A DNA stretch of 63,521 nt, counting the filler, from Lenisia limosa (Eukaryota > Protista > Breviatea): NCBI GenBank assembly GCA_001655205.1. It is 10 parts of 10 records of this genome, joined end to end, with 100 filler letters (N's around TTAATTAATTAA, not from the genome) between each part and the next. Parts side by side here need not be neighbours in the genome. Positions count along the whole stretch, not along the records: positions 27,959 to 37,091 come from LPNZ01005768.1; 9 more parts are not named here. The stretch is one strand, 5' to 3'. Numbering within the stretch: position 1 is the stretch's first letter; the number at the start of each line of letters is the position of its first letter. The position numbers and the translations under genes were made by a program. This document shows, in pieces, positions 27,641 through 37,091 of the stretch. Under the pieces are notes generated by a model. It saw only the letters and a program-made list of their open reading frames with translations, was not told the DNA's origin and did no database searches.

Positions 27641-28028
27641 GAGGAAGATAGGTGTCATAGCTATCTGTGATATATTGATATACGTATCTAGTCAGATTTA
27701 TTTATGTATAAATGATATGATATAATATAATATTCATATTGTATATCATATGTATTATATCATATCATTTACATATATTACATGTATATAGCAATGAGAA
27801 ATAATAAATAAGGATGTATCTGGCCGAACTGTCCACACCATCACGATTATAAGAGATANNNNNNNNNNNNNNNNNNNNNNNNNNNNNNNNNNNNNNNNNN
27901 NNTTAATTAATTAANNNNNNNNNNNNNNNNNNNNNNNNNNNNNNNNNNNNNNNNNNNNGCAAATGAATCCCTTAAAAGAATATATTTGTTATTATATAAC
28001 GAGTTGTGCTTCAGCTAAAAAGAAACAG

Positions 28029-28193
28029 ATGAGCACAAAAATAAATTTAAGTACTGACGGATTAAATCAAAATGAGATTTTAAAACTTATATATTGCAAA
28101 CAGATTAATGAAATACACGAAAAAGGAGATATTAACAAATTAAAAGAAAGATTAGGAATGTTAGAGTTTATCAAAAATTTTCAACGACTCTAA
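28029..28193 (+). CDS. Small hypothetical protein (54 aa)
   Basis: ATG follows an upstream in-contig stop (TAA 28016-28018); open to TAA 28193. No motif. Confidence 0.35.
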   Translation: MSTKINLSTDGLNQNEILKLIYCKQINEIHEKGDINKLKERLGMLEFIKNFQRL

Positions 28194-28403
28194 AGTCCTC
28201 TTGTTACTTTCACGTAACATATCGGAATCAAATTCTTTTATGAACATTTCTACGGAATCAGTAACTAAATATCTTGACATTTCCTTAAACTCTTGATTTG
28301 GAAAATTTAAAGTTTCATATTCCAAAAGAATATTTTTGTAAATGGATTGAAGTTCTGACTTATCTTGGCAGTTCTGCAACTTATCTATTAATGGTGTAAT
28401 CAT
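28161..28403 (-). CDS. Small hypothetical helical protein (80 aa)
   Basis: ORF MITPLIDKLQNCQDKSELQSIYKNILLEYE... with bacterial-like composition; overlaps the 54-aa ORF convergently. Confidence 0.45.
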   Translation of the reverse strand: MITPLIDKLQNCQDKSELQSIYKNILLEYETLNFPNQEFKEMSRYLVTDSVEMFIKEFDSDMLRESNKRTLESLKIFDKL

Positions 28404-28475
28404 AATTATAATATTTTTGACTAAATTAACAAACTAAATCTGACTGACAAGCATAATGCAGAATAAAAGCCGAAA

Positions 28476-28604
28476 GCACAACACCGTATATAAAAAATAA
28501 CTAGAGAAGTGCCGACTCTAAAATTTTGGCGCACTAAAAAACACAACGTAAAACCGAAAAATAACGAATATTTGCACGTTACTTTTCATATACAAACACG
28601 TTGT
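28476..28604 (+). repeat. attC-like recombination site A (3' end runs into a gap)
   Basis: GCACAAC-ACC-GTATAT-A-AAAA-A-TAAC ... GTTA-C-TTTT-C-ATATAC-AAACAC-GTTGT: imperfect palindrome with an AAC...GTT core, 125 bp from inverse core to the core G at 28600. Confidence 0.75.
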
Positions 28605-28787
28605 NNNNNNNNNNNNNNNNNNNNNNNNNNNNNNNNNNNNNNNNNNNNNNNNNNNNNNNNNNNNNNNNNNNNNNNNNNNNNNNNNNNNNNNNNNNNNNNN
28701 NNNNNNNNNNNNNNNNNNNNNNNNNNNNNNNNNNNNNNNNNNNNNNNNNNNNNNNNNNNNNNNNNNNNNNNNNNNNNNNNNNNNNNT

Positions 28788-29921
28788 TCTGAAATGTTTA
28801 GTAAAAGAAAATCTATTGACTATAAATTCAGTGATGCATTAGAATTAGTTGACTATGATGAAAATCGAATTGACTTCCTAATACAAAGATCAGTAATAAG
28901 AGAAAATGGCGATACTTTAGAACTTGATGACTTGTTTTTAGAATTCTTTGAACAGGTTTTAGATGTTAATGAGGAAATCAACCTATCATATATTGACGAA
29001 AACATTAAAAACATAAAGGAAAACATTGATTATTTCTTAAATGAGAATAATGAAAACAGAAAATATGGGTATCTAAGATTCATTAAAAAAACGTTCAAAA
29101 AAATTGGGCTAATCACTCTAAGAAGCGTTGTTGATTTAAGGCGAAATATTGACAACACATTTAAAAACGAATCGAATTACAAAAACAAACAATTAAAGCT
29201 TGAAAACCTTGATGAAAAAAGAACAGTTATCAAAAACTTGATAATTCAAACATTAAAGATTTTAAACGAAGATGAAGTCACCTTTTTTAATAGAGCTTTA
29301 GATGAAGAGTTAAATAGAATTATTATTGACCTTAAACATCAACTCGGGGAATGTTCACACAATTTAATTGAGATTGAAAAACAGATAATTGACTATCTGA
29401 ATCAAATAAAAATTCACGGAAAATTTTTAGAAAAACTAAGAAAATTAAAATACCTAAAAGACCACTTCTTAATTGAAGCGGAAACCGATATTAAACAAAT
29501 TATATCAAACAACAACTCAGTAATTTTTGAACCAAGAACCAGCGAGCCTTTAAATCTATCCATAGATTTTTTAAGAGAAGACGAAAAGGCTTTTGAGGTA
29601 ATAAAAAGAATTGCGAAAAATCATAACGACCGCAAAGTCTTTAGGGCAGAATTGGCCGATAGCATTTCAGATGAATTTCTCGAAAACAGTATTGAAGAAG
29701 AAATAATGATAAATTACGAGGAAATCAAAAATAGTTTTCTTGCAACTAGTGATAACTTATTCAATTTTATTTTAAGTTATGACTTTTCAAAAACTGTTGA
29801 GTTTAATGAACGGGTTACAATCTTCTGCCAAGTTATTTCACTTTACGAGCAAGAATTAGACATAAAAAATAATTTTCAAACATCCAATGGTATAGAATAT
29901 GCTATTGTAACAGCAAGATAA
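28788..29921 (+). CDS. jetA: JetA/MksF-like kleisin subunit of a Wadjet/MksBEFG system; start codon lies in gap 28605-28787
   Basis: Open frame of at least 377 aa (SEMFSKRK...EFFEQVLDVNEEIN...) as first gene of an operon with an SMC ATPase and a Toprim protein. The role is assigned by position and size. Confidence 0.7.
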   Translation, partial: SEMFSKRKSIDYKFSDALELVDYDENRIDFLIQRSVIRENGDTLELDDLFLEFFEQVLDVNEEINLSYIDENIKNIKENIDYFLNENNENRKYGYLRFIKKTFKKIGLITLRSVVDLRRNIDNTFKNESNYKNKQLKLENLDEKRTVIKNLIIQTLKILNEDEVTFFNRALDEELNRIIIDLKHQLGECSHNLIEIEKQIIDYLNQIKIHGKFLEKLRKLKYLKDHFLIEAETDIKQIISNNNSVIFEPRTSEPLNLSIDFLREDEKAFEVIKRIAKNHNDRKVFRAELADSISDEFLENSIEEEIMINYEEIKNSFLATSDNLFNFILSYDFSKTVEFNERVTIFCQVISLYEQELDIKNNFQTSNGIEYAIVTAR

Positions 29922-29925
29922 ACCT

Positions 29926-30498
29926 ATGGTAACTAAATATACTTCAGACATATTTGATGTACTTCGTAGAGGACAATTTATCTGTTCAAACAGTCCAGAC
30001 GAACACATTCAAACACTCTACAAAGTCTTAGAAGATAGCGATACTTTTGAGGATTTGTACGAGTATTTTTATCAAATCAATTACATTTTAGAACAAGGTA
30101 ACGAATATTTTTACTTTTCTCGGAATGAAAGAAATGTAGATTTAGATAGAAAATTAGAAAAGGCATTTGGTTGGATTGATACGATAGATTTTTTCAAAAC
30201 GTTTGACTCGTCTTTTGATGTTGGCTACAGGTTTTCGCCTTCTGATGTCGTTAATCAGTTGAAAAATAATGCGGATTTAAAGTCTAAGTTAGATAATTTT
30301 AAAAAACTTAGTGGCGATAAAAAGAACTATTCAAATAGAGTAAAAAAAATAATTGAAAAGTTAGAAAAAGACAACTTTATAACATTAGAAAACGAAATTA
30401 CTGAATCCTATAAAGTACTCACTTCATTTAACTACCTTAAAGACATTATTTCAATTATAAATATTCCCGAAGAAATAGAAAATGAGATACCTGAGTAA
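29926..30498 (+). CDS. jetB: JetB/MksE-like KITE subunit (190 aa)
   Basis: Typical size; starts 4 bp after jetA and overlaps the SMC gene by 17 bp; predicted winged-helix-type composition (GRFICSNS-like N-terminus, YFYFSR). Confidence 0.75.
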   Translation: MVTKYTSDIFDVLRRGQFICSNSPDEHIQTLYKVLEDSDTFEDLYEYFYQINYILEQGNEYFYFSRNERNVDLDRKLEKAFGWIDTIDFFKTFDSSFDVGYRFSPSDVVNQLKNNADLKSKLDNFKKLSGDKKNYSNRVKKIIEKLEKDNFITLENEITESYKVLTSFNYLKDIISIINIPEEIENEIPE

Positions 30499-33400
30499 AA
30501 TAATCTTTATAAATAGTGCTTCGGTAAAGTATGCTGAAATTGAATTGGATGGTAATGTTCATTTAATTGGCACACAAGGTGTAGGAAAAAGTACTTTGCT
30601 TCGTGCTATTTTATTTTTTTACAATGCGAACAAAACGAAACTAGGGATTCCAAGAGAGAAAAAGGCATTTGATGATTACTATTTTGAATTTCAAAACTCA
30701 TACATTATTTACGAAATTGTAAAAGACGGACTTCCATTTTGCGTGTTAGCTTATAAATCCAATGGCAAAGTTGCTTTTAGGTTTTTTAATTCTGCATACA
30801 AAAGAGAGTTATTTATTGATGAAAATAATAGAGCTTTTGAAAGTTGGGACAAAATAAGAAATGCCTTGGGTAGAGAAATACATTACAGCCCTTTGGTAAC
30901 AAGTTATGAGGAATTTCGAAAGATAATTTACGGAGACAACAAAGGGCTAAAACCTAATTTCAGAAAATACGCACTCATTGAAAGTAAACAATTTCAAAAT
31001 ATCCCAAGAACGATTCAGAATGTATTTCTGAACTCAAATTTAGAAGCTAAATTTATTAAAGACACCATTATAAATTCGTTAAATGAAGTTGAATTTATTA
31101 TTGATATTGAGAATTATTCTAAAAACCACTTACGTGATTTTGAAACGCAAATAAACAATATTAAGATATGGTTTAAGGAAAATAAAAAAGGACAAATTAT
31201 AATAAGGAAGCAAGCTGAGAAAGTTATTGACAAATACAGAATACACAATTTAGTTAACCGTGAAAAGAAAGAACTTGCCATTGTCTTGGGCTCAAGAATT
31301 CAATATGTAGATAGAGAAAAACCAATTTTACTTTCCAGTTATTCCAGAGAAAATGAAGCATTAAGCAAACTGATTGACCAAAGAAATAAATTAGAAGAAA
31401 CCCAGAAAAAAAGAGAACAGAAAATAATTTCTGAAATTGATTATCTAAAAAAAGAACTCTCAAAAGCAAAAGATAAACAAGAGGAATACAATAAATTAAA
31501 CATTAATCAAATTATTCAAAAAGTGTCTCAAAAAGATGCTTTAACTAACAAGGTCAAAGCTTTAGAAGAAGAAAAACAACTTCTTACTTCAAAATTTTCT
31601 GAACTCAACCAAAAGTATGATGCCTTAATTACACAAGCTCAAAACCAAAACCAAGAATTCACGAATCAAAAGATCGCTGAAATCAATAACCTCAATAGTG
31701 AGTTTAGTGATAATAAAACCAAATTATTTAACAATTATCAAGAAATAATAAATCAAATTGGTAAGGACAACAAAGCTGAAAAAGAAAAGGCAATAAATAG
31801 TCTAAACACGATTTCTAATGGAGAAAACAAGGTTAAAAACAAAAAATCGGAATTAAAACACCAAACTTTTTATAGTGATGAAATTCAGCAATGCAAGGAT
31901 GAAAAGAAAAAACTTGAGGACGATATTTCAAATTCTAAAAGCACCATTTTAGATGCTAAAAACCAAATAGCAACCACTCGAAAAGAATGGGAATTTGAGA
32001 CGAAGGAAGTCGAAAGGAATTATCAAATAAGATTCGACCAAGAAACTGAAAAAACTCAAAAACTATCAGACAAAATACAAAGCATAGAAAACAAAATTAG
32101 CCAAAGTAAATCATCACTTTATGGTTGGCTAAACGAAAATTTTCCAAATTGGGAAAACAGTATAGGAAAAGTGATAGATGAAGAAAATGTACTTTTCAAC
32201 ACAGAATTAAACCCTAAAATAATTGATGAAAAAACAACCTCATTTTTTGGAGTTGAACTTAATTTAAGCTCATTAAGTAATCGAATTAAAACTGTTCAAG
32301 AATACAAACAAGAAATTTCTGATTATCAAGAACAGATTAAACAAGTCCAGAATAACATTAAGCAATTAAATTCTGAAAAGGAGAATAATCTACAAAAACT
32401 TAAAATCAAATTCGGTAAAAAAATCAACGCTCTTAAAGATTCAATTTCTGAAAATGAGTATGTCTCTTCACAAAGCGAAGAAAAATTAAAGAAAAACAAA
32501 GTTGAACTAGATGAATGGGTTGAAAAAGCCAAACAAACAAAAGCAACTTTATTGCAACAATTGGAAAATGATTTAGAAGAATTGGCTGCTAAAAAATTGA
32601 ACGCACAAAACAATCTTGACAATATTAAAAATGGAATAAAGAGGAAAATAACCTTAAAAGAGAACGAAAGAAATACTGAGTTAAAAAACTTAGAAGAAGT
32701 AAAAAATGAAAAGATTAATGTCTTGAATACTTCAATCTCAGAAAATAAAAAAGAAACTGACAAACGTATTCAAGAATTAAAAGCGAAGCAAACTAAAGAA
32801 CTCGATAATAAAGGTGCAGACACAAAAAGACTTTCTGTAATTGATGACAATTTAGAAGAAATTGAAAAGAACTTAGCATTTATTAAAAACAACGAACGTA
32901 TTGTAATTGAATATGAAAAAGATAAAAGAGAGCTTTTTGATAATGTACCAACTTTAAAAGCAAATAAAGTTAGTGAAGAAAAAAAACAAGAAGTAATCAC
33001 AGACGAGCATAAAGTTGAGATGAACAAAATGAACAATAGATGTTCTAAACAAGAAAGTGTTGTGAACACTTTAAAATCTCAAATTGATGAATTTGAAACT
33101 GACTTGAAAGCATTTGAAACGTTTAAACTATCAGACGCCTTTGCAACAATTCAAAAATATTTGCTTGATGAAATAAAAGAGTTTGAACATTCTAAAACTG
33201 CAACTTCCATTATTTCAGAAATAAATAGTAAGCATTGGAAAGGAATAGAAACTTTTAAAGAATTGCAGCAAGCTACCAATGCTTTTACAGGTAATTTTGA
33301 CGAACAGAATATTTTTAGTTTCAAGGTAAAACTAAATTCAGACAACGATTATTTAAACTTTGCGTCCGACTTAAAAGAATTCATCGAAGAAGACAAAATA

Positions 33401-34180
33401 GCTGAGTTTGAAAAAAGAGTAAACGAGCGTTTTGCAAACATCATCCATTTGATAGGAAGAGAAACTACCGAACTAAATTCTAAAGAAGCCGAAATAGAAA
33501 AAATAATCAAAAAAATAAATGATGATTTTGTAACTAAGAATTTTGTTCAAGCCATAAAGGAAATGGAAATGCGAACGAAAGAGAGCTCAAATCCAATAGT
33601 GAAACTGTTAGTCAGTATAAAAGAGTTTAATGATGAAAACAATTTAGAATTAGGCGAAACTAATCTATTTACATCTTCAGAGACTAACTCAAAAAATCAA
33701 AAGGCAATAGACTTATTAAAAAAATTGATTGAAGAAATTGAGAAAACAAAAAGTTCCACATTAACCTTATCCGAATCTTTTGATTTACAATTCAGAATAG
33801 TTGAAAATGATAATGATTCAGGTTGGGTTGAAAAACTTTCTAATGTAGGAAGTGAAGGAACAGATGTTTTGGTAAAAGCAATGATTAATATTCTACTATT
33901 AAATGTGTTTAAAGATAATGCTTCCAGAAACTTTAAAGACTTTAAGCTACACTGTATGATGGATGAAATAGGAAGACTTCACCCCAATAACGTAAAAGGA
34001 ATTTTGAGGTTTGCAAACGAACGGAACATATTATTAATTAATGGTTCGCCAACTAGTCAAAATGCGACCGATTATAAATACACTTACAAATTAGCAAAAG
34101 AACAATCTAAAACTGATGCAAAGAAATACATTACAAAAATCAACAGATTGGTAAAAGTAAACGCCAAAGTACTTAGCTAA
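30482..34180 (+). CDS. jetC: JetC/MksB-like SMC-family ABC ATPase (1232 aa)
   Basis: Walker A GTQGVGKST, long central coiled coil, degenerate signature LSNVGSEGT, Walker B/D-loop HCMMDEIGRLH, switch NGSP. Confidence 0.92.
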   Translation: MRYLSKIIFINSASVKYAEIELDGNVHLIGTQGVGKSTLLRAILFFYNANKTKLGIPREKKAFDDYYFEFQNSYIIYEIVKDGLPFCVLAYKSNGKVAFRFFNSAYKRELFIDENNRAFESWDKIRNALGREIHYSPLVTSYEEFRKIIYGDNKGLKPNFRKYALIESKQFQNIPRTIQNVFLNSNLEAKFIKDTIINSLNEVEFIIDIENYSKNHLRDFETQINNIKIWFKENKKGQIIIRKQAEKVIDKYRIHNLVNREKKELAIVLGSRIQYVDREKPILLSSYSRENEALSKLIDQRNKLEETQKKREQKIISEIDYLKKELSKAKDKQEEYNKLNINQIIQKVSQKDALTNKVKALEEEKQLLTSKFSELNQKYDALITQAQNQNQEFTNQKIAEINNLNSEFSDNKTKLFNNYQEIINQIGKDNKAEKEKAINSLNTISNGENKVKNKKSELKHQTFYSDEIQQCKDEKKKLEDDISNSKSTILDAKNQIATTRKEWEFETKEVERNYQIRFDQETEKTQKLSDKIQSIENKISQSKSSLYGWLNENFPNWENSIGKVIDEENVLFNTELNPKIIDEKTTSFFGVELNLSSLSNRIKTVQEYKQEISDYQEQIKQVQNNIKQLNSEKENNLQKLKIKFGKKINALKDSISENEYVSSQSEEKLKKNKVELDEWVEKAKQTKATLLQQLENDLEELAAKKLNAQNNLDNIKNGIKRKITLKENERNTELKNLEEVKNEKINVLNTSISENKKETDKRIQELKAKQTKELDNKGADTKRLSVIDDNLEEIEKNLAFIKNNERIVIEYEKDKRELFDNVPTLKANKVSEEKKQEVITDEHKVEMNKMNNRCSKQESVVNTLKSQIDEFETDLKAFETFKLSDAFATIQKYLLDEIKEFEHSKTATSIISEINSKHWKGIETFKELQQATNAFTGNFDEQNIFSFKVKLNSDNDYLNFASDLKEFIEEDKIAEFEKRVNERFANIIHLIGRETTELNSKEAEIEKIIKKINDDFVTKNFVQAIKEMEMRTKESSNPIVKLLVSIKEFNDENNLELGETNLFTSSETNSKNQKAIDLLKKLIEEIEKTKSSTLTLSESFDLQFRIVENDNDSGWVEKLSNVGSEGTDVLVKAMINILLLNVFKDNASRNFKDFKLHCMMDEIGRLHPNNVKGILRFANERNILLINGSPTSQNATDYKYTYKLAKEQSKTDAKKYITKINRLVKVNAKVLS

Positions 34181-35037
34181 TGAAATTATCTTTAAAAATA
34201 GCAAAAGTATTAGTGCGATTAATCAATGGCGAATCTGTTCCCAATAGTACTGCTAAAAGCCAAATTTTAGAAGAATTAATTGCCGAAAACATTTTATTCA
34301 GGAAAGGGAAACACAAAAAGCATCTAGAACTCATAAATGAAGAAGGACTTCTAATTTACTTGGCAAACCAATTACAAATTAACAATCTACACGATTATAT
34401 TTCTGCATTAGAAAATGAAGACTCTACTCGTGCGGAATTTGTAAAAATTACAACTGATTCTAAACACTCAAAAGAGCGAACATTTAAAGGCTTTTTAGTT
34501 AATAGTTATACAACGATAAAAGCAGAATTAAACGACCAAGAAATTATCATCAACCCCTCTAAAGGTAGCTTTATTTTTATCTATGACTATGAAACATTTA
34601 AAATACCTAAAGGAATAACAGTTGTTGGAGTTGAAAATCCAAGAAACTTTAGACACATTCAAGAACAGAAATATTTATTTGAAGATATCAATCCATTATT
34701 CATATCTCGTTATCCACAGAACCAAAATAAAGATTTTATTAAATGGATGAAGTCTATACCAAATAATTACCTACATTTTGGAGACTTTGATATCGCAGGA
34801 ATTGGAATATATGTAAATGAATATAAATGCTATTTATCAAATAAGTCATCATTTTATATTCCGAACAATATTGAAATGGATTTAAAGAAAAACGGTAATA
34901 GAAAACGATTTGACAACCAAAAAATAAACTTTGATATTAAAAAAATACAAGAAACTGCAATCAAAGATTTAATAAGAATAATTAACTCAGAAAAGAAAGG
35001 ACTTGACCAAGAGTATTACATTAAAGCCAATGCATAA
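34180..35037 (+). CDS. jetD: JetD/MksG-like Toprim-domain nuclease (285 aa)
   Basis: Toprim motifs VVGVENPRNF (catalytic E) and YLHFGDFDIAGIGIY (DxD); translationally coupled to jetC by a TAATG overlap. Confidence 0.85.
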   Translation: MKLSLKIAKVLVRLINGESVPNSTAKSQILEELIAENILFRKGKHKKHLELINEEGLLIYLANQLQINNLHDYISALENEDSTRAEFVKITTDSKHSKERTFKGFLVNSYTTIKAELNDQEIIINPSKGSFIFIYDYETFKIPKGITVVGVENPRNFRHIQEQKYLFEDINPLFISRYPQNQNKDFIKWMKSIPNNYLHFGDFDIAGIGIYVNEYKCYLSNKSSFYIPNNIEMDLKKNGNRKRFDNQKINFDIKKIQETAIKDLIRIINSEKKGLDQEYYIKANA

Positions 35038-35040
35038 AGC

Positions 35041-35099
35041 CATACACATTTGCAATTCGCACCAACCAACGCTAAAGCCAAAAATTGCAAAAGAGTATG
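35041..35099 (+). terminator. 17-bp stem-loop after jetD (possible terminator or RNA-stability element)
   Basis: CATACACATTTGCAATT (35041-35057) pairs with AATTGCAAAAGAGTATG (35083-35099) with 2 mismatches. There is no clear U-tract, so the function is uncertain. Confidence 0.4.
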
Positions 35100-35141
35100 T
35101 CTTTGCCAACGCTGACAGACGGACGAAAAAGAAGTACGACC

Positions 35142-35275
35142 GCACAACATTGTGTATAAGCAATAGCGGTTTAAGTGCAAACTTGAGCCGTTTTTTTGTT
35201 TTATTAAAGTATATTGTAATCCGAAAAGTGGCAGCCAAAAATCCGCTACTGCTCATACACGAAACCGTTATGTGC
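35142..35275 (+). repeat. attC-like recombination site B (complete)
   Basis: GCACAAC-ATT-GTGTAT-A-AGCA-A-TAGCGG ... CCGCTA-C-TGCT-C-ATACAC-GAAACC-GTTATGTGC; 126 bp from inverse core to the core G at 35267; same architecture as site A. Confidence 0.8.
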
Positions 35276-35300
35276 AAAACCAAATGAACTATAGTCTTTT

Positions 35301-36170
35301 ATGATTTCCGAACTGAATGAAAATAAATTTTTTAAAACTAAAGTTCATTTAAAAGTCATTTTAGAAGAAGGATTTAGAATAATTGATGAAAATAAATCTA
35401 ACTTCAATATTTATTATAGTCTTTTCAAAAGGTTTATTTATAGTTTTGAGTCATTAAGTTTACTTTTAAAGGATTACGACCAAAACAAAAGACATAGAGA
35501 ATTTCCAATATCTATAGTTTTAAGAGCTGGACTATTAGATTATTTAATAATCTTGTATCTCGCAACTTTTCAAGCCCAAAAGAAATCTAATCCTGAATTA
35601 ACCGAAACCTACGAGAAAGAAATTGATAAGTTAGTTTCGGAACAAATTAGAAGATTTATAAACATAGCTGAAAAAGACAAACAGTATAAACATTACAATC
35701 ATTCTGACCATCGTAAAGATGTTGATATGTTTACAAAATTATTCCCTGACCTTTTCGACCCCAAAATTCCTATTGACTATAACAAACCTGGAAAATCTTT
35801 ACGATATCAACAAAAGGATGATTTGACAACAAGAGTCATTAGAAAGTGGTTGGACAAAGTTTCAGATGGTTTAAAGAATATTCATTACCAAGATGTTTTT
35901 TATCTATATGATTTATATTCTAAATACGACCATTTTGGAACTGCATCCATGTTATTAGAGTATACAGATATAAACACTGTAAGCGCAAATATCTTTGGTT
36001 CAATTTTTCATATTTGTGAAGGAATTGGATTTTGTACAGATTTAATGAAGGAGGAAATGTTTTGTAAATCAGATTTTGAAAAACTTGATTATGAACTTGC
36101 AGTTTTAAGAGGAACTGTTAATACTAAAACTCTTTATTTAAGTCCTGAATATAAAAAAAGATATGAGTAA
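35301..36170 (+). CDS. Cassette-borne hypothetical protein (289 aa), HEPN/DUF5677-like motifs
   Basis: Intact ORF 25 bp after site B; SIVLRAGLLD and YDLYSKYDHF resemble the R-x3-E and Y-x3-S-x3-H motifs of DUF5677/HEPN-like proteins. Confidence 0.75.
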   Translation: MISELNENKFFKTKVHLKVILEEGFRIIDENKSNFNIYYSLFKRFIYSFESLSLLLKDYDQNKRHREFPISIVLRAGLLDYLIILYLATFQAQKKSNPELTETYEKEIDKLVSEQIRRFINIAEKDKQYKHYNHSDHRKDVDMFTKLFPDLFDPKIPIDYNKPGKSLRYQQKDDLTTRVIRKWLDKVSDGLKNIHYQDVFYLYDLYSKYDHFGTASMLLEYTDINTVSANIFGSIFHICEGIGFCTDLMKEEMFCKSDFEKLDYELAVLRGTVNTKTLYLSPEYKKRYE

Positions 36171-36175
36171 GTTCA

Positions 36176-36186
36176 GCACATAACAA
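36176..36186 (+). repeat. attC-like site C (5' inverse core only; remainder in the 112-N gap)
   Basis: GCACATAAC lies 5 bp after the stop codon and is the exact reverse complement of GTTATGTGC, which ends site B. Confidence 0.65.
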
Positions 36187-36329
36187 NNNNNNNNNNNNNN
36201 NNNNNNNNNNNNNNNNNNNNNNNNNNNNNNNNNNNNNNNNNNNNNNNNNNNNNNNNNNNNNNNNNNNNNNNNNNNNNNNNNNNNNNNNNNNNNNNNNNAA
36301 AAAGTATTGAATGAACAACTCAAGATTAA

Positions 36330-37067
36330 ATGAAATATAAATTGGAAAATAAAGATATCGTTGTTGTAGTTTTAATTATTGTTGCCGCACTTGTTGCTTG
36401 CGGATTATCAGTTTATCAATATTTAGAAGGAGTTAAAAAAGATAAAGAAGTACTACTTAATAACCTCAAATTAGAAAATGCAAATCTTGAATTAAAAGAC
36501 AAAACTAAACAATTATTAAAGTCTCAAAAAAAGTTGATCAAAATTCAAGGTGAAACAATTAAAAATATTGTAGGAGACGGTTTTGCAGAGGCTTCTCCCC
36601 AAATTAAAAACGACGAAATTAAATTAATTTTAAGAAGCAAATCTGAATATAATATTTATAATATTTTAGTTGAAGTTATTAATTTTGACAAAATGAAAAC
36701 TTGCGATTTTGAATTTAAGAATAATGAATATTATTTTCCCGAAAAATGTTATACAGAAAATGTCACAAAAAACAATATAACAACTCTCAATCCAAATACT
36801 TGGGTAGAGTTAAATTACAATTTGAAACCAAATTTTAAAAGTATTAACTTAATTGTAAAACAAATTTCTAACAATATTACTACACTTCAATATTTAATTA
36901 TAAACTACGAAGAGGGTCAAGATAAACATCCATATTTTTTTAGGATATTTGAGATTTCTCGAGCAAATAAGGAATATAAATTACTTTCTCAATCAAAAGA
37001 CAATATTCCTGAAGAAATATGGAAAGAAAGATTTCCATATAAAATGAATTTCAACATAATCAATTAA
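36330..37067 (+). CDS. Cassette-borne membrane-anchored hypothetical protein (245 aa)
   Basis: N-terminal hydrophobic helix IVVVVLIIVAALVACGLSVYQYL, then a coiled-coil-like stretch and a beta-rich domain. Confidence 0.8.
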   Translation: MKYKLENKDIVVVVLIIVAALVACGLSVYQYLEGVKKDKEVLLNNLKLENANLELKDKTKQLLKSQKKLIKIQGETIKNIVGDGFAEASPQIKNDEIKLILRSKSEYNIYNILVEVINFDKMKTCDFEFKNNEYYFPEKCYTENVTKNNITTLNPNTWVELNYNLKPNFKSINLIVKQISNNITTLQYLIINYEEGQDKHPYFFRIFEISRANKEYKLLSQSKDNIPEEIWKERFPYKMNFNIIN

Positions 37068-37077
37068 AGACACCTTT

Positions 37078-37091
37078 TGCTAACACCGGTA
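37078..37091 (+). repeat. attC-like site D (start only; truncated by contig end)
   Basis: TGCTAAC-ACC-GGTA begins 10 bp after the stop codon, mirroring the CAAC-ACC-GTA start of site A. Confidence 0.5.

Follow-up and report, generated by a model that had tools for sequence, protein, structure and literature searches.

A contig filed in the genome assembly of the breviate protist Lenisia limosa (GCA_001655205.1) carries bacterial genes set between attC-like sites, as in an integron, together with no integrase gene, and it raises the question of which system could have built such an array and in what organism. The part of this contig considered here (positions 27,959 to 37,091, from record LPNZ01005768.1; hereafter the piece) belongs to the window, the whole 63,521-nucleotide stretch of DNA that was analysed, and a first-pass annotation had described it as an integron-like gene-cassette array in a probable Bacteroidota contig. 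Comparative analyses suggest, with a probability of roughly 0.85, that the piece is the integrase-proximal end of an array belonging to an integron-like system of marine Flavobacteriaceae, and that the recombinase of this particular array has been lost.

Organism and Sites of the Array

The public contig ENA ERZ3820729 NODE_17 (211 kb; loci L001 and L008, L numbers designating the loci compared), at the end of which the piece lies, served as the reference for the piece. The three segments of the piece that were read are 100% identical to this contig (L008), with zero differences, and the host is Xanthomarina gelatinilytica, the product of its yjeF gene falling within a 100%-identical cluster that bears this name. 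The Bacteroidota origin proposed at first reading is therefore correct and can be narrowed to the Flavobacteriaceae. The reference also closes both assembly gaps: gap 1 comprises 178 nt, in which lie the last 2 nt of the first site, a leader of 114 nt and the opening 20.7 codons of jetA, while gap 2 comprises 120 nt and takes up nearly the entire third site. The two fills recur letter for letter in L009 and L002, which come from another sample that was assembled independently.

The four attC-like sites of the first-pass annotation, all on the plus strand, lie where it placed them, with the ends and stop-codon distances that it gave. Site A (28476..28606) consists of R'' GCACAAC, the spacer ACCG, L'' TATATAAAAAATAAC and, further on, L' GTTACTTTTCATATA, the spacer CAAACAC and R' GTTGTGC; it is readable as far as 28604, ending ...CACGTTGT, with the remainder in gap 1. 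Site B (35142..35275) likewise has R'' GCACAAC, followed by a core that runs from AAC to GTT at 35146-35269 and by R' GTTATGTGC. Site C (36176..36299; L008 11997-12128) begins with R'' GCACATAAC, has its body in gap 2 and ends at 36299 with R' GTTAGCA, the gap-free copy reading GCACATAAC / AACG / TGTATAGCTCATTGCGG ... CCGCAACGAGCCATACA / CAAACAC / GTTAGCA. Only the start of site D (37078..37091), R'' TGCTAAC and the spacer ACCG, precedes the end of the piece; the reference extends 50 nt beyond, to its own contig end. Site D probably represents a second site subfamily, which has L'' GTAACCGTTGC.... The array continues past the contig end. Sites B, C and D begin 104, 5 and 10 nt, respectively, after a stop codon. 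With four sites within 9 kb, the piece has the form of a cluster of attC sites lacking integron integrases (CALIN), which calls for two or more attC sites close together and no integrase nearby.

The partners of the outer arms are those expected of a cassette array. R'' of site B pairs with R' of site A, and R' of site B (GTTATGTGC) pairs with R'' of site C (GCACATAAC), of which it is the exact 9-nt reverse complement, as had been noticed from the sequence of the window. The first-pass annotation had further held that the integron-like reading would fall if the filled gap after 36186 contained no matching right arm ending in GTT; the gap-free copy contains CAAACAC GTTAGCA, and this GTTAGCA tail is the exact reverse complement of TGCTAAC in site D, not of the left arm of site C itself. 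Two junctions in the window are thus informative (9 nt between B and C, 7 nt between C and D), the second of them foretold while its sequence was still hidden in a gap, and both obey the cassette rule, whereby the left arm of each site pairs with the right flank of the site before it.

Two further observations concern the readability of these sites. The assembly gaps fall in or next to sites A and C, which the first-pass annotation had described as expected of sites repeated many times in the genome; they do not prove a high copy number in this genome. Five short-read Logan contigs (L003-L007) all break 40 nt past the gene for a 289-aa protein, within the small, perfect palindrome GAATTCC TAATC GGAATTC of site C, and assembler breaks of this kind may also explain why the gaps of the piece lie at sites.

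A Family of Sites in Marine Flavobacteriaceae

An exact pattern drawn from the conserved parts of sites A-C, scanned over one genome per species, recovered sites of ~125 nt in at least 120 loci. More than 30 genera of marine Flavobacteriaceae are represented among them, plus a few metagenome-assembled genomes (MAGs) labelled otherwise. Among the genera are Psychroserpens, Winogradskyella, Polaribacter, Tenacibaculum, Lacinutrix, Zobellia and Maribacter, as well as Aequorivita, Algibacter, Mariniflexile, Olleya, Nonlabens and Xanthomarina. A profile search of these loci returned 430 matches, up to 10 per 8 kb; orientation is uniform inside each locus (312 sites, 121 loci), and no Rfam family matches the sites. 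Their common layout is N6-AAC / 4-nt spacer / L'' ... L' / 7-nt spacer / GTT-N6. The second subfamily to which site D probably belongs (L' ...CCGTAACTGACGGTTATAC, spacer, GTT; also present in L087 and L096) is missed by both the pattern and the covariance model described below, so that the family is larger than counted. Typical sites also occur in two MAGs labelled as Arenicella sp. of the Gammaproteobacteria (L042) and as Bacteroidales (L081), where they could result from mis-binning or from transfer between orders.

Throughout the family, the left arm of a site matches the site that precedes it rather than its own other end. Over 7 nt, the left arm and the right flank of the previous site are complementary at a mean of 5.6 positions, with 71 of 160 junctions perfect, as against means of 2.8 for the site's own right flank and 2.6 for random pairs. 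Position by position, complementarity at positions 1-6 is 0.79-0.88 with the previous site and 0.32-0.56 within the same site (182 junctions, 121 loci). Such offset pairing is what a crossover at GTT would produce. In all loci, the six variable paired nucleotides are followed by a conserved cassette-start motif, (A/C)A(T)TTG(A)G, and position 8 is complementary in just 1% of junctions, a conserved mismatch that closes the R stem (positions 7-10 after GTT or before AAC).

Consistent with a crossover at this point is the finding that several cassettes are common to two genomes, at 87-94% identity, with unrelated neighbours. For the pairs L051/L100, L047/L096 and L087/L090, homology begins at the upstream (C)GTT and halts at the GTT of the cassette's own site, and metagenome contigs that match site B cease to follow the window at 35269/35270, where the GTT of this site ends. 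These cases supply the presence/absence polymorphism that the first-pass annotation had proposed to look for. Its further claim that recombination falls between G and TT stands in so far as cassette homology ends at GTT, the exact bond within GTT not being resolvable. Comparison between genomes delimits cassette units that end at GTT and shows that they have moved from one genome to another, and it places the crossover in or beside the conserved GTT.

The anatomy of the cassettes is equally regular. In 184 cassettes, the longest open reading frame (ORF) is co-oriented with the site in 157 and opposite to it in 5, with none found in 22. The median cassette measures 897 bp, with medians of 14 nt from stop codon to AAC and 39 nt from GTT to start codon. 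Gene content is hypervariable, the biggest cluster among 771 ORFs spanning 7 loci, and the cargo includes a ParE toxin, a C5 DNA methylase, a beta-lactamase-fold protein, a sigma-70 factor and a cation-efflux protein.

Folding and Strand Asymmetry of the Sites

The consensus fold of 81 bottom strands is a 17-bp stem in which 7 pairs show compensatory changes. Two of the stem pairs are G·T in 81 of 81 bottom strands, and the top strand has A·C mismatches in their place. No conserved extrahelical base or bulge was found in the 17-bp stem, a minority of sites having one extra bulged C. When cassette sites were rebuilt for folding, by attaching the left arm and core of each to the right flank of the site before it, the bottom strand proved the more stable in 181 of 184 (mean -23.7 vs -20.2 kcal/mol; Wilcoxon p = 1e-31). 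A covariance model built on the bottom strand (R1) gives 76.4 bits for site A (E = 6e-14), 80.2 for site B (E = 1e-14) and 85.1 for site C (E = 1e-15), as against 9-20 bits for the top strands of the three sites (20 bits for B). Together these data demonstrate a structure that is specific to the bottom strand and that has been maintained with covariation. The covariance scores and the offset pairing over 182 junctions show that the sites are not a product of chance. The earlier description of the locus as an integron-like, CALIN-type cassette array is supported.

Site A has a peculiarity of its own. A second, inner left-half-like motif at 28541-28604 (CACAAC GTAAAACC GAAAAATAACG) pairs with the same right arm, and as a result the minimum-energy fold of this site is a short inner hairpin instead of the full site. 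The inner motif could be a partial duplication or part of a fused site.

Recombinase and Array Heads

The sole recurrent gene that is not part of a cassette encodes a tyrosine recombinase of the Xer/IntI clade, 370-388 aa long (Pfam PF00589 and PF13495), which is found in L018, L032, L040, L063 and L104; L135 retains only a C-terminal part of it. In every case the gene precedes the array and is transcribed in the direction of the cassettes. In Polaribacter sp. ALD11 (CP025119), the recombinase gene is followed by 30 sites over ~21.6 kb, in one orientation and all downstream, there being no site in the 10 kb upstream of it; a tRNA-Met gene lies just upstream of the recombinase. The recombinase of P. 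staleyi (CP150665) shares its locus and its upstream genes with that of ALD11, but its cassettes are wholly different. Insertion sequence (IS) elements with rve-family transposases are present inside the P. staleyi array (L138 17348-20669). Directly 3' of the recombinase stop codon stands a conserved attI-like site, TATATAAC(N2)GTT (L104, L063, L040, L136), the right flank of which complements the left arm of the first attC, as exemplified in ALD11 by GTTGGGCAAC against GTTGCCCAAC. A constant recombinase and a constant attI-like site are thus demonstrated at array heads, and the tyrosine recombinase for which the first-pass annotation had advised a search beside array ends does exist at complete arrays, in a form without the insertion specific to IntI.

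This last property is evident from several comparisons. Firstly, the best NCBIfam model for the recombinase is NF040815 (XerA type), whereas the integron integrase model TIGR02249 matches in two separate stretches at 192-205 bits (cutoff 265) and the IntI1-type model scores 123-151 bits (cutoff 435). Secondly, in alignment with VchIntIA/IntI4 (PDB 2a3v), residues 82-255 correspond to 5-178 and residues 279-351 to 245-317, which leaves 23 aa (256-278) where IntI4 has 66 (179-244) and indicates that the recombinase lacks the additional domain that IntI has around patch III; with archaeal XerA it aligns continuously, end to end. Additionally, the AlphaFold model (predicted local distance difference test, pLDDT, 80.6) has an extra N-terminal beta/alpha domain of ~75-90 aa and no inserted helix, its best structural matches being XerA, IntI4 and XerH. 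In their source records these proteins are named XerD, integrase or 'site-specific tyrosine recombinase/integron integrase'.

A mechanism can be proposed from these elements. The recombinase would excise cassettes as circles and insert them at the attI-like site, and recombination would take place on the folded bottom strand, as it does with IntI. The additional domain of IntI reads the extrahelical bases of the folded attC, as seen in the VchIntIA-VCR structure (PDB 2a3v; VCR, V. cholerae repeat). In the flavobacterial sites, the two invariant G·T wobbles may set strand choice and register instead of extrahelical bases, which would be in keeping with the lack of the domain that reads such bases. 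From here the data lean, if only slightly, towards a broader proposal: that marine Flavobacteriaceae harbour a second integron lineage, hitherto unrecognised, with chromosomal platforms of up to 30+ cassettes, an Xer-like recombinase in which the IntI additional domain is either lost or was never present, strand selection by G·T and whole defence operons in stock, which standard finders would miss as they require the IntI domain.

Other systems could in principle have produced sites of this kind. It is improbable that the piece is a CALIN whose cassettes were moved by a canonical integron integrase encoded elsewhere. The sites do have the attC layout and an offset of the G/TT type, and reviews list Bacteroidota, without going further, among the phyla in which integrons have been detected, yet in all nine loci with a visible array start (9/9) the adjacent recombinase is without the additional domain and scores below both integrase cutoffs, the sites are devoid of conserved extrahelical bases, and IntegronFinder 2.0 records for Bacteroidetes In0 elements only, plus one complete integron in Salinibacter ruber.

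Rather less probable still is a movement of duplex modules by Xer-type recombination, in the manner of pdif modules, with either host XerC/D or the array enzyme acting on a short core around GTT. While the end-to-end alignment with archaeal XerA and the Xer-like NCBIfam scores would suit such an enzyme, the sequence to the right of GTT varies, and the junctions therefore contain no dif-like 11-6-11 core. Moreover, complementarity is maintained between arms that lie ~125 nt apart, the asymmetry between G·T on one strand and A·C on the other is hard to explain for a duplex substrate, and the sites all point in one direction, whereas pdif modules alternate.

Least probable of all is a set of intergenic palindromes of the REP (repetitive extragenic palindrome) or MITE (miniature inverted-repeat transposable element) kind, or of structured RNAs such as terminators or antisense small RNAs with G·U pairs, since this view, though it agrees with palindromic, repeated, intergenic sites and with covariation that would suit a bottom-strand RNA, leaves unexplained the offset pairing with the previous site, the end of cassette homology at GTT and the constant recombinase and attI-like site at array starts, and is opposed by the lack of an Rfam match, by the position of the sites at a median of 14 nt past stop codons, by the co-orientation of ORFs (157 vs 5) and by the absence of the target-site duplications that the first-pass annotation had named as the mark of REP or IS ends.

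Against an integron-like flavobacterial system, several points have to be set. The genome from which the piece derives has no integrase at the array, the search having covered the array locus; the recombinase is tied to the arrays by 9 loci; and recombination itself is deduced from comparison. The crossover is resolved no finer than the invariant GTT and the spacer. Within the window, all junctions other than the two informative ones join GCACAAC to GTTGTGC and are consistent yet uninformative, and the read comparison at site B, which used contigs only, is silent on rare excision events.

The Array Start in Xanthomarina gelatinilytica

The origin of the integrase-less state can be traced at the beginning of the piece, where the end of a truncated tyrosine-recombinase gene and an attI-like site occupy 27959..28009 on the plus strand and form the start of the array. 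The gene ends ...GGCAAATGA at ~27959-27966, and the attI-like site (TTATATAACGA / GTT / GTGC, 27992-28009, with its GTT at 28003-28005) constitutes a fifth site that had been overlooked. Over the preceding 45-60 nt, the sequence aligns with the final ~15 recombinase codons of the Polaribacter and Tenacibaculum platforms (L008 3745-3834). Beyond these codons, tblastn and a six-frame profile search detected no more of the recombinase gene upstream of the attI-like site, and no recombinase was found in 13 kb of L008. The earlier observation that the contig holds no integrase is thereby confirmed for both the window and L008, with the qualification that the last ~15 codons of one remain.

The neighbouring genes tell a similar story. 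Two other Xanthomarina genomes lack the array and have an intact GNAT gene of 171 aa beside yjeF. In the genome of the piece, the GNAT gene is reduced to codons 1-43 and is followed by ~0.9 kb of non-coding DNA and then by the recombinase stump. The truncated GNAT gene and the stump indicate that a rearrangement brought the array to this locus, at the cost of the recombinase gene. As judged from its sequence, the window array once had a recombinase gene and is now an integrase-less relic. The routes proposed for CALIN formation, as quoted in PMC8618304, include loss of a recognisable intI and genomic rearrangement, and the stump and the GNAT truncation correspond to these two. The piece probably represents the integrase-proximal end of a chromosomal cassette array, which in X. 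gelatinilytica is a frozen relic of the CALIN type unless a second copy of the recombinase acts in trans.

No tRNA gene was found at the start of the window array, unlike in Polaribacter. The 0.9-kb non-coding stretch contains six tandem 11-nt units, TAYGGAGTANC (L008 3078-3143), with an inverted, degenerate copy of these units ~270 nt downstream (about L008 3395-3450), and these repeats may be remnants of an element responsible for the rearrangement.

Cassettes of the Window

The largest of the cassettes in the piece is cassette 2 (28603..35269, plus strand), which measures 6,663 bp in the gap-free copy, as compared with a family median of 0.9 kb and a 95th percentile of 2.75 kb. It is predicted to be a complete jetABCD-like operon of the Wadjet/Mks defence type, with all genes on the plus strand. 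The first, jetA, starts in gap 1 and ends at 29921, encodes 398 aa in L008 and matches no family; a 470-aa jetA ORF was rejected as an artefact of reading through the run of N letters. The product of jetB (29926-30498) matches Pfam MksE (E = 3e-43). That of jetC (30482-34180) is a 1232-aa ATPase of the SMC (structural maintenance of chromosomes) type, which matches DUF3584 over its full length (E = 8e-58) and, at its N-terminus, JetC of PADLOC, this weak match being the only one that PADLOC gave for the cassette proteins. The jetD-like gene (34180-35037) encodes a short protein that matches DUF7281 (E = 2e-10), and DUF7281 clusters share JetD_C and DUF2399. A PDB sequence search with JetC and JetD gave no match to solved Jet structures.

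Within cassette 2, the operon is bracketed by a related leader (in gap 1; L008 4431-4545) and trailer (35038-35141, plus strand), each of ~85-110 nt and both holding CACATTTG ... AAAAGAG ... TTTGCCAACGCT. At ~90% identity and at the same distance from attC, the leader recurs in L134 and L018 and the trailer in L086, L104 and L124, which belong to other genera and carry different cargo. In two metagenomes, the contig word depth over 35022-35167 is about 25x and several hundred x that of the flanks. Leader and trailer could possibly constitute a nested mobile unit, a promoter/terminator pair or protein-binding sites.

Cassette 1 (28004..28602, plus strand) is delimited by two GTT triplets, that of the attI-like site and that of site A. 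It contains an ORF of 54 aa counted from an internal ATG (28029-28193, plus strand) and one of 80 aa on the minus strand (28161-28403), neither with a family match. A 76-aa ORF at 27963-28193 begins in the integrase stump and spans the attI crossover; the 54-aa ORF, with its ATG at 28029, 24 nt past the GTT, fits the cassette anatomy better, and it converges on and overlaps the 80-aa ORF of the opposite strand. Look-up of the first-cassette protein found it in two contigs only, with the same context in both. The ORF of cassette 3 (35301..36170, plus strand) encodes 289 aa of no known family, with its stop codon 5 nt before site C, and that of cassette 4 (36330..37067, plus strand) encodes 245 aa with an N-terminal hydrophobic segment, likewise of no known family, with its stop codon 10 nt before site D. 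No match to the window cassette proteins was found in NCBIfam, nor any homologue among the other loci (at least 120) of the site family.

Comparison with Known Systems

Integrons are defined by IntI and its additional domain, and they are regarded as mainly proteobacterial and almost absent from Bacteroidota. In full-text searches, whose coverage mostly excludes subscription journals, no literature linking integrons to the genera listed above was found; the flavobacterial system is apparently undescribed, a prior description being possible. If the proposal is true, the definition of the integron and its known host range would widen, the system would offer a natural experiment on the recognition of single-strand, structure-specific recombination sites, and a large unmined pool of cassettes, with defence systems, toxin-antitoxin pairs and beta-lactamase-like genes, would exist in abundant ocean bacteria. 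The array also shows that a Wadjet-like operon of four genes and 6.7 kb can move as a single cassette.

The window array resembles a CALIN in having four attC-like sites without a recombinase gene, intI having been lost by a rearrangement of the kind put forward in PMC8618304; it differs in that its sites are of the flavobacterial type and that an attI-like site and the last integrase codons are still attached. The operon of cassette 2 shares with Wadjet/MksBEFG systems the four-gene jetABCD order, an MksE-like JetB, an SMC-type ATPase with DUF3584 and a JetD-like DUF7281 protein; it differs in being very divergent, with a JetA of no detectable family, and in forming, as a whole, one cassette. 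A Wadjet operon combines a kleisin-like JetA, a KITE JetB, an SMC ATPase JetC and a Toprim JetD, of which JetB and JetC are recognised in cassette 2, and JetD is indicated by DUF7281. The Xer enzymes (archaeal XerA, PDB 4a8e and 5hxy; XerC/D) are the best sequence and fold matches of the flavobacterial recombinase. Their substrates are short duplex dif sites, at which they resolve dimers, and Xer enzymes are not known to head arrays of folded 125-nt sites; pdif modules, for their part, are built from 28-bp duplex sites (XerC, spacer, XerD) in alternating orientation.

A further comparison is offered by the 'inverted integrase' integrons, reportedly present in Treponema and Chlorobi, in which the integrase is said to be transcribed in the direction of the cassettes. 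The integrases of this group are reported to retain the IntI additional domain. The flavobacterial recombinase is transcribed in the same direction as its cassettes, but without that domain.

The sedentary chromosomal integrons, as exemplified by the superintegron of Vibrio cholerae (VchIntIA/VCR), provide a further parallel. Both systems comprise a recombinase, an attI site and tens of co-oriented, mostly promoterless cassettes; both have homogeneous, imperfect palindromes of ~125 nt with AAC...GTT ends, a crossover at GTT and folding of the bottom strand; and both hold, at a fixed chromosomal locus, hypervariable cargo that includes toxin-antitoxin and defence genes. They differ in that the flavobacterial recombinase has 23 aa where the additional-domain region of VchIntIA has 66 aa and carries an extra N-terminal domain, in that its sites have two G·T wobbles that never vary and lack conserved extrahelical bases, in that the integrase is co-oriented with the cassettes, and in that the hosts are Flavobacteriaceae. 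Taken together, the flavobacterial system lacks two of the features by which classical integrons are defined, namely the IntI domain and extrahelical bases, and has the organisation of an integron in every comparative respect tested.

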